Shown piece by piece: positions 18,313 to 20,951 of a DNA stretch of 64,000 nt (its first letter is position 1; each line of letters begins with the position of its first letter). This DNA is from Podarcis muralis (lineage: Eukaryota): NCBI RefSeq assembly GCF_964188315.1, contig NC_135657.1, positions 64,976,001-65,040,000 of the forward strand, read 5' to 3'. The notes beneath the pieces were generated by a model that was not told the origin of the DNA, searched no databases, and worked only from the letters and a program-made list of their open reading frames with translations. Made by a program: the position numbers and the translations under genes.

Positions 18313-19717
18313 TTAGCTATAAATAGAATACACAGTCTTGCTCTATTATATTACAGCTAAATAACTTGTCCATTTTATAAGAAAAGTAGAGGAAAGTAAA
18401 TGTGTGCATGTCTGGAAGAAAGCAGGGGAGAGAAAAATCTCACTGCTGAAAAGTGTTCTGCCAAAATAAACCTTGGAGCATTTTATAAATTAATTCTGGT
18501 CCGCATGTTTATTTTTCTTTTGGAAATTCTAAAATGAGACCGTTCAAATCATCTTATTGGCAGCAGCATATTTTTAGAGGAGTGAAGAAAAAAACCCCAC
18601 AGAGCTCTGTTACTGGAAGGTGCTTGCTATTTTTTTCACTGAAAGTATTCTTTTCTTCTGACCTGGCATATTAGATAAGATTTATACTTCTGACCTGACA
18701 TTATGTAGTTAAGATTTATTCTTCTGTATCAGCTTTATGATGCTTGCAAGCTATTTATTTACAGCATGGGGAATATATTTATGGCATAAGAAACAGAGAT
18801 TGTACTTTAAAAAAGAGTAAAAAAAAATTTCAGGGAGAGTCCCATGTAACAGTGAAAACAGCAGATGCCCCTACAGCTGCTTCCCCCGGGCTCTTGGGGT
18901 ATTTCCTTTGTTGTTTCAGCATCAGCATTAAACAATTTTAAGTCATTTTGATGGAGAGCAACCTTAGACGGTTCCAAAAGCTCCAGCACATTCAAATATA
19001 TGCTGAAGTGCAAGATAAAACAGGCTTTTTTCCTTAAGCTGCGATCTGTCGCTAACACAGATCCGATTGACTTGATTTTGATTCATTGTATTTCTATGCC
19101 ACTTTCCATTCAAAATCATCTAAAAGAAGCTTACAAACAATAAATAACAATTACAGAATGGAACATCATGAATACAACATGAATCATAGAAAATAAATAA
19201 CAAATCATCAACGAAATAATTGCAATCTCTAAAACACCATTAACAAAGCAGCAACTGAAAAATAAGCCAAGCATCGCAATAATCCATAAAACAATATCAA
19301 CGTTAACAAAATAGCAACTAAAAAAAGAGAGAGAGCTATGCACAGTCAAGTCTGTACGCAGACTCTTCACGATCACATGTCTTATTATCTTTCATTCTAT
19401 TCAGTTCATTAAAACACAGAGGATGGACTGGGAAGTCCTGAGGGAAGTGATTTTTGTTCTGCATTATTTTGTTTTGGGAAATGTATGATGTATATATTTA
19501 AAATCTGGAAAATGTGTCAAATGAAATGAAATAAATGGAATTTAAAGAATAAAATAAAAACACACATAATGCCTGTTGTTAAGACAGCTCAGCCAAATGC
19601 TGTGCCAGCTGGGGTCCTCAGGTAGCGAGTGGGCCATGGTGGAGGCAGTGGGGCTCTCAGGCCTATCGCCAGTGGTAAAGGATATGTTGAGTCAGGATAG
19701 TAATCAGGGAGTCCATT

Positions 19718-19848
19718 CCCACTCGAGAAAGTCCAAGGCAAGCCTGTCCCTCTGGAGCAGAGAGTCGTGGCTGCATTTGGTGTAGAGGCAGACCAAGAGG
19801 TCCAGCAGCGCCTCCACACTCAAGACACTCTTGCTGGGCACAGTCCAG
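19718..19848 (-). pseudogene. Fragment of an MRCK-family kinase (CDC42BPB-like) exon 1
   Basis: Minus-strand frame reads [37 protein letters not shown] versus recalled CDC42BPB [36 protein letters not shown]. No start codon; in-frame stop 4 codons after the W. Confidence 0.8.
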
Positions 19849-20951
19849 CCAAAATAAAGCTCAGTGAACTTACATTAATTTCACTGGGAGTATTAAGCAC
19901 ATGTTTACATCCCTCCTATTAGAATAAATGAGAGTTAAAAGAGCTTAACTTTCATTAGATCATACTCATTGTTTCAAGTGCTGGTTTTGATTACATTGCC
20001 ATTTTAAAGAAAAGGTAACTCTACTTGGGGCTGATTTACACATGCACATACACCATTTGGTATCTCATCACTCAGATGCTTAACACTTAATAACTCACAG
20101 CTGAATGCACAAATTACTGCCTCTACTGAAAAGGAATGCATTCCCCAAAAATAATCAGGTTAAGTTCTGTTCATTTTTTGTTTTGTGATGGTGCTGTCAC
20201 ACATGTAAGTCATCACAACGCTGGAGCCATTGGCTGACAATTATTCACATATGAACATATCTTTCACTTGAAATGCCAAATTATGGTTTACAAGACTTAG
20301 ATGTGGTTAATTGCAACATCCAAATTGGCAAACCATGGCTTAAAGCAGATCTGCAAACTATGGGTAGAAAATTGTAGCACTAAGGATATCATTCTGTCAA
20401 TACAAGCATTTTCCCTTGCTTCTACGCTCTCTTCTGTGGAGCCTTCCAGGGCAGATTTTGGAGAGATATGGGGTCGCATGCCCCACATTTCTATAAAATA
20501 TCCAAGGAAACTCACCTTTTCCATGTGCTCTTTGGTGAAATTCCCAGCTTTCCATTCTGTACCACTTTGACTTAGCCTGTAACAAAGTCTAAGAATGTGC
20601 AACTGAAAAAGCTACATTCTTCCTAATGCCTACCCCTGCCTCCACTTCCCTCTCTTCCTCTAATGTTTCCCTGTGTCAATTTTAGTCTGAAAGCACCTCA
20701 GGGTAGGGACCTGCTTTGTTATCTATTACACCGGGCCTGCCACTTCCACATAATTTACTTATGCAACTGCAGCCTCCAAATAAATAAATGGAGAGTGGGG
20801 AAAACTTACCATGGACAGAGCTTTTTAATCCCCACATCTTGCCTACTGGGCTCTGGGAAGGTCGTGGTAAGTAAGGCAGAGGACTAAGCTCACTCCGGAC
20901 AGGTAGGGATGGTTGCACAGGAGGGGGGCATGGTTCTGAGGGTTTCCTTTG

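Follow-up and report, generated by a model that had tools for sequence, protein, structure and literature searches.

In a 64,000-nucleotide stretch of the Podarcis muralis genome (RefSeq assembly GCF_964188315.1, contig NC_135657.1, positions 64,976,001 to 65,040,000 of the forward strand; hereafter the window, numbered from its first letter), we found what is probably a single old, RNA-templated, partial and chimeric retro-insertion of ~242 nt in an R-spondin intron. Read on the minus strand, it would consist of 122 nt copied from exon 1 of CDC42BPB, which encodes the kinase MRCK-beta, followed by 120 nt of other sequence, here called X. From the comparisons described below, we put the probability of this reading at about 0.6. 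The insert stands out as a GC-rich island: the G + C content of positions 19600-19799 was 57%, against 31-40% in the flanks, in agreement with an earlier reading made from the letters of the window alone (the sequence-only reading). The window sequence is free of N runs. The stretch containing the island was found in at least 18 DNA sequencing runs from 6 studies, all of one organism, and in no other organism; it is therefore no assembly artefact.

The parent of the exon piece was determined by protein and nucleotide comparisons. The minus-strand translation of positions 19716-19850 was identical to the peptide given in the sequence-only reading, which had assigned it to the N-terminus of MRCK-beta. 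In a phmmer search of the PDB, the fragment peptide matched MRCK-beta (E=2.7e-10), MRCK-alpha (E=6.8e-6) and DMPK (E=1.6). Against 1.84e9 representative proteins it gave 38 matches, the best with an E value of 1.2e-8 and 72% identity, and the matches retrieved were CDC42BPB/MRCK exon-1 open reading frames (ORFs) reading on into intron 1. With the best match as seed, a word search returned MRCK-beta or CDC42-binding proteins of Naja naja, Crotalus adamanteus, Varanus komodoensis and Sphaerodactylus townsendi, as well as unnamed exon-1 models of Lerista edwardsae and Gekko kuhli; the relatives that turned up in the word search and the cluster listings were from snakes, a skink, geckos, a monitor and birds only. 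Alignment of these sequences, together with short protein rows from mammals, provided two lineage markers. The fragment has the extra codon in CS(R/H)DS that is common to bird and reptile sequences, and it has the L of RDRL, as in squamate sequences, instead of RDRY or RDKY. Given that the E values were best for the beta protein and that the markers are those of squamates, the parent is, by its sequence, squamate CDC42BPB, with CDC42BPA, CDC42BPG and DMPK excluded.

The limits of the fragment were established with 8 reptile genomic loci containing the parental exon 1 (from skinks, Gekko and snakes, and locus L004). One of these loci, L002, has an exon 1 (1190-1367) identical to that of Lerista edwardsae (locus L007, 6001-6178), with a near-identical intron start, and is therefore from a skink. 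With each of the 8 parents, blastn gave a single ungapped alignment of 122 nt, from 19839 down to 19718, corresponding to coding nt 57-178. The fragment is 5'-truncated and spans codons ~20-59 and the first base of codon 60. Its identity to the parents was 74.6-81.1% (skinks 79.5%, Gekko 81%, snakes 75-78%, L004 74.6%); the alignment with the skink exon, 79.5% over 122 nt, had an E value of 2.6e-25. When the sequence upstream of 19839 was aligned, with an anchor, to codons 1-19 and the 5' untranslated region (5'UTR), 34-85% of dinucleotide shuffles reached or exceeded its score, so that the frameshifted CTGGAC (LD), which the sequence-only reading had added to the fragment at this end, was not upheld.

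The homology ends at 19718, which is the last base of exon 1 (nt 178) in all 8 parents. Directly after this junction, the parents read GTGAGG (8/8) and the window reads AATGGA, with only 1 of 6 positions alike. The probability of such a poor match, if the junction bases were homologous at ~80% identity, is ~0.002 (binomial, calculated by hand). The next exon in mRNA order does not follow the exon-1 piece either, as X is similar neither to exon 2 nor to the start of the kinase domain. The end of the similarity at the exon boundary and the absence of both exon 2 and a GT donor had been noted before and are borne out here. The similarity extended neither into exon 2 nor, at any of the 8 loci, into parental intron 1, an extension that had been named in advance as speaking against a chimeric transcript. 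An end on the last base of the exon, with GTGAGG absent, points to a template of spliced RNA and not to a copy of genomic DNA.

A repeat search showed that a 14-nt direct repeat, identical at 12 of 14 positions (short form TTTGGCTG..CTGT), adjoins both ends of the 242-nt insert. In the window, 0.39% of positions have a 12/14 repeat partner 150-400 nt downstream; the chance becomes 1.0% when a tolerance of 2 nt is allowed, and 0.15% when the partner must sit at the other edge of the island. The repeat adjoins the start of the homology and closes the island, a coincidence with a chance of 0.1-1%; we therefore regard it as a probable target-site duplication (TSD) round one insert made of the exon piece and X. 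The two mismatches are compatible with a non-CpG decay of ~8% per copy. The repeat is preceded by TTTAT and starts with TTTGG (in the reverse orientation TTAAG, then ACAG), and the 3' end of the insert, ...GGCACAGCA, passes directly into the second repeat copy. The sequence-only reading had reported neither poly(A) nor a TSD; no poly(A) was found by us either, and its remark on the TSD is superseded by the repeat at both edges. The coordinates are given in Table 1.

Table 1. Features of the island, in window coordinates
Feature	Position	Strand	Remarks
CDC42BPB (MRCK-beta) exon-1 copy	19718..19839	minus	ungapped blastn, HMMER, lineage markers
X	19598..19717	minus	120 nt, directly at exon-1 donor end, inside putative TSD
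Upstream copy of putative TSD, TTTGGCTGGACTGT	19840..19853	minus	ends exactly at homology start
Downstream copy of putative TSD, TTTGGCTGAGCTGT	19584..19597	minus	closes GC-rich island

The second half of the insert, X, has a G + C content of 57% and contains 2 CpG. Its first 50 nt are moderately GC-rich and its last 70 nt have ~65% GC (counted by hand). Blastn and tblastx against the 8 parental loci, including promoter, 5'UTR and intron 1 (as much as 23 kb, in the cobra), gave no match, and an origin of X in parental intron 1, 5'UTR or promoter was rejected on this ground. An origin in exon 2 or in the GTPDY motif of the kinase was likewise rejected, as no similarity was seen to exon 2, the kinase start or MRCK residues 1-415. 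X had no match in the PDB, and neither X nor any frame of the island belonged to a Pfam family. Rfam gave no hit to X at E<=0.1, ARAGORN predicted no tRNA in it, and its fold z-score of 0.25 is not that of a stably folded RNA; these results dispose of a known RNA, a structured RNA and a tRNA-derived short interspersed element (SINE). There was no further copy of X in the 64-kb window. The first 31 nt of X match an L1-type element in the window (14213-16022) at 15083-15053, on the same strand, in 23 of 31 nt. With a shuffle fraction of 0.017 on that strand, this match is of marginal significance; we regard it as chance, and an origin of X in this element was not upheld. Two motifs had been pointed out in the sequence-only reading. 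The strong-Kozak motif CCACCATGG is indeed present within X, at 19642-19634, and GLPDY had been compared with the GTPDY of the kinase, for which no MRCK match was obtained even at E<=10. Both are best read as chance.

The exon piece has decayed in the manner of a sequence free of selection. Compared with the consensus of the 8 parents, it shows 22 differences in 122 nt, 12 of which are at CpG sites; its CpG number went from 15 to 3 and its G + C content from 69% to 59%. The 18 changes private to the fragment are spread over codon positions 1, 2 and 3 as 5, 7 and 6, against 7, 5 and 21 variable sites among the parents. Codon changes are non-synonymous in 10 cases and synonymous in 8, against ratios of 3:11, 2:6 and 3:9 between parents. 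By this substitution pattern, the fragment is a neutrally decaying, methylated pseudogene piece. Private non-CpG changes amount to 7 in ~92 non-CpG sites (7.6%), which at squamate neutral rates would place the insertion tens of millions of years ago; this is a rough upper bound, because the parents used for comparison are those of other species.

Reads of three RNA runs and of one small run of uncertain type were mapped to one 4,501-letter stretch of the window. The depth was zero over 18406-20820 in all three RNA runs, the R-spondin expression of the samples being unestablished, and the small run gave one 161-nt contig at a depth of 2. Multi-copy or expressed reads, or mRNA, of at least 93% identity over 18406-20820 were not found. 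Exonisation of the fragment, which had been suggested from its orientation, thus gained no support from these runs. The ~2.4-2.5 kb round the island are unique within the window. On either side, interspersed repeats (17953-18405 and 20822-21123) draw hundreds of RNA reads with many variant letters, and sharp loose ends were seen at ~18075, ~18312, ~20955 and ~21071 in all four runs. These repeats are probably of the SINE type or the long interspersed element (LINE) type and bound the unique 2.4-kb segment that carries the island.

We propose the following course of events. The template would have been a transcript of CDC42BPB in which exon 1, after use of its normal splice donor, continued into a further 120 nt of RNA, the present X. 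One possible partner is an alternative or cryptic exon of intron 1, which is long (>23 kb in the cobra locus L003, where no exon 2 lies within the 23 kb downstream of exon 1); others are a repeat or other RNA spliced in cis or in trans, and a second template reached by a jump of the reverse transcriptase. A LINE-type reverse transcriptase would have copied the RNA at a staggered chromosomal break; copying would have ended early, at coding nt 57, which would explain the 5' truncation, and filling in of the stagger would have created the 14-nt TSD. The insert would never have had a function, and it would have lost its CpGs and drifted neutrally since. What the comparisons show directly is the parent gene, the junction at the exon end, the lack of intron sequence and of exon 2, the flanking repeat, the neutral decay and the absence of reads; the RNA intermediate, the enzyme and the nature of X are inferred. 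Several points weigh against the proposal. X matched nothing that was searched, so that its role as spliced partner is likewise inferred, and all parents that were compared with X are from other reptile species. The putative TSD is imperfect and was found post hoc, and no endonuclease site of the TT/AAAA type was present at the repeat. Furthermore, X contains neither a poly(A) tail nor AATAAA or ATTAAA. As poly(A), polyadenylation signal and TT/AAAA site are all lacking, classical L1 retroposition is not demonstrated. LINE clades other than L1 that do without poly(A) exist in lizards.

Of the origins offered by the sequence-only reading, the retrocopy of a chimeric or alternatively spliced transcript is the one that agrees with the end on the donor base, the absent start of the intron and the likely TSD. 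Its interpretation as a whole was partly supported; the observation itself was confirmed, with corrected limits and with the flanking duplication as a new element. An internally deleted retrocopy had been offered as well, in which X may come from elsewhere in the MRCK mRNA; the comparison of X covered MRCK residues 1-415 and the short parental loci.

If X were resident intron or an older insertion, only the 122-nt exon piece would have been inserted, as a patch of cDNA or RNA in the repair of a double-strand break, and the repeat would be a coincidence. Such an event would be similar to the templated insertions of class 2 (PMC5110952; see below), which resemble the present case in the lack of poly(A) and of an endonuclease motif. 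It would also account for X being without identifiable source and only moderately GC-rich in its first 50 nt, and 12/14 repeats are common, with 16 families in 2.5 kb. However, the repeat meets the start of the homology to the base and also closes the island, for which the chance is the 0.1-1% given above, and the ~65% GC of the last 70 nt of X is unlike the AT-rich intron. We therefore consider this explanation unlikely.

A rather improbable origin, in our view, is a copy of the CDC42BPB 5' region made at the DNA level, whether through template switching in replication, a segmental duplication or uptake by a DNA transposon, in which the breakpoint would have fallen on the end of the exon by chance. 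The absence of poly(A) would be natural for such a copy, and X is GC-rich like promoter DNA, but it is unlike the 5'UTR, promoter or intron starts of the 8 parents, and the breakpoint falls on the very base of the splice donor. A search for terminal inverted repeats and a short TSD round the island gave 0 pairs under strict criteria and, under relaxed criteria, only two AT-rich, chance-like pairs of inverted repeats. The 14-nt duplication is longer than the 8 bp of hAT elements. In addition, the flanks are unique in the window (2.4 kb) and attract no multi-copy reads, against hundreds for the neighbouring repeats. Transposon capture, the third of the origins offered earlier, gained no support: termini are missing, the flanks are unique in the window and multi-copy reads are absent.

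The insert could also be the record of a free 5'-exon splicing intermediate, reached by a LINE reverse transcriptase that jumped from a 120-nt RNA, or of an RNA in which X was an exon, either an ancient short isoform of CDC42BPB or a trans-spliced product. This is a speculative extension of our proposal to which we attach little weight. If it were true, chimeras joined at the donor of a first exon would be known from a reptile as well, and from retrotransposition machinery that does not depend on poly(A).

A circular permutation is very improbable. Here the insert would have arisen from a circular RNA of exon 1 as a retrocopy, or by rolling-circle reverse transcription over more than one turn, with X consisting of 5'UTR and codons 1-15 and with the 14-mer as the overlap of the second turn. 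The motif CCACCATGG in X is similar to the Kozak region of the parents, where the best local match of X lies in two of the snake loci, and the 14-mer includes CTGGAC, as do codons 15-16. Although codons 1-19 are near-identical in the 8 parents (differences: one base in L006, three in snakes), the part of X that follows its ATG aligned no better than shuffles, 0.29-0.32 of which reached or exceeded its score. For the whole of X, z-scores were -0.7 to 1.7 and shuffle fractions ranged from 0.02 to 0.98 depending on the parent; at the 80% identity of the other half, a match would be unmistakable. Local, semi-global and anchored alignments to 5'UTR and codons 1-20 were all at the level of shuffles, and the circular RNA origin was rejected. 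Hardly credible, finally, is a functional element (an exonised cassette, a small ORF in the R-spondin transcript or a regulatory island), for which the sense orientation, an open frame of 45 codons and the GC-richness could be cited, and against which stand the zero reads in three RNA runs, an MRCK-like frame that has no ATG start and meets a stop 4 codons past the junction, the neutral substitution pattern and the absence of Pfam or Rfam matches.

The R-spondin gene was recognised by its coding exons on the minus strand, at ~7125-7448, 6076-6249 and 2569-2859. The first of these, searched alone, matched R-spondin-1 and -2 with E ~1e-16. The exons were placed singly. As they lie at ~7.4, 6.2 and 2.8 kb on the minus strand, the island is, by its position, inside a large intron that precedes the first furin-repeat exon and in sense orientation to R-spondin, as the sequence-only reading had it. 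The gene is putatively RSPO3 and not RSPO1 or RSPO2. It is plausible that the host intron is R-spondin intron 1; the exon for the signal peptide was not located by a heuristic search of the window. A GC- and CpG-rich patch amid AT-rich sequence at 49251-49750 (66% and 58% GC; 18 CpG/500 nt) may be the promoter or a 5' exon of R-spondin, and no signal-peptide ORF was recognised in it.

Two further observations concern variation and repeats. In the region 19400-20000, five runs (X14-X18, from studies P2 and P5) contained 0.67-0.70 of the sampled 31-mers; the range was 0.87-1.00 in the remaining 13 runs that had half or more of the words. The lower share in the five runs may be due to population divergence or to an insertion or deletion near the island. 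In the ORF listing, simple repeats appeared at 36522-36740 and ~13650-13713 as runs of CVCV... and RERE..., representing a dinucleotide microsatellite and a purine-rich repeat.

Compared with known systems, the insert shares with the classical L1 processed pseudogene an intron-less, RNA-derived junction, 5' truncation, a (putative) TSD and neutral decay. It differs in that only part of exon 1 is present, without 3' exons, 3'UTR or poly(A), and in that this part is joined to foreign sequence. From gene capture by Pack-type hAT elements it is set apart by the lack of hAT termini, of an 8-bp TSD and of any multi-copy sign, and by its breakpoint on a splice site, which implies capture of RNA and not of DNA.

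The templated sequence insertions of Onozawa and Aplan (PMC5110952) are likewise patches of a few hundred nt from a distant transcribed locus at an apparently random site, probably formed via reverse-transcribed RNA. Those of class 1 have a duplication of at least 5 bp, poly(A), a polyadenylation signal and a TTTT/A site, and those of class 2 have no TSD and show microhomology, microdeletion or untemplated bases at the junctions (PMC5110952). The insert described here fits neither class cleanly: it has a duplication like class 1 without the poly(A), the signal or the TTTT/A site, and class 2 is without TSD.

Taken alone, a neutral and silent fossil in an intron is ordinary biology and of little importance. 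It is, however, a small and clean example of a host first exon that would have been cut at its splice donor, fused to another sequence and inserted with a putative TSD and without poly(A). The closest parallel is found in human, where first exons in sense orientation are joined at their splice donors to LINE-1 (bioRxiv 10.1101/2025.02.02.635956). In these chimeras, TSDs are 11-17 bp in the Alu/LINE-1 examples and 15 bp in an mRNA example, the exons are preferentially those preceding long introns, and they are ascribed to splicing in cis or in trans or to template switching (10.1101/2025.02.02.635956). The Podarcis insert agrees with them in having a first exon in sense at its 5' side, a junction at the donor, a putative TSD within 11-17 bp and a parental exon that precedes a long intron (>23 kb in the cobra). 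Unlike in the human chimeras, its 3' partner is not recognisably a LINE, poly(A) and TT/AAAA are missing, the exon is 5'-truncated, and the host is a lizard. If X were the tail of a lizard LINE or SINE, or a cryptic exon of CDC42BPB, the insert would be a reptile case of chimeras so far described in human, and a hint that machinery other than L1 makes such chimeras too.

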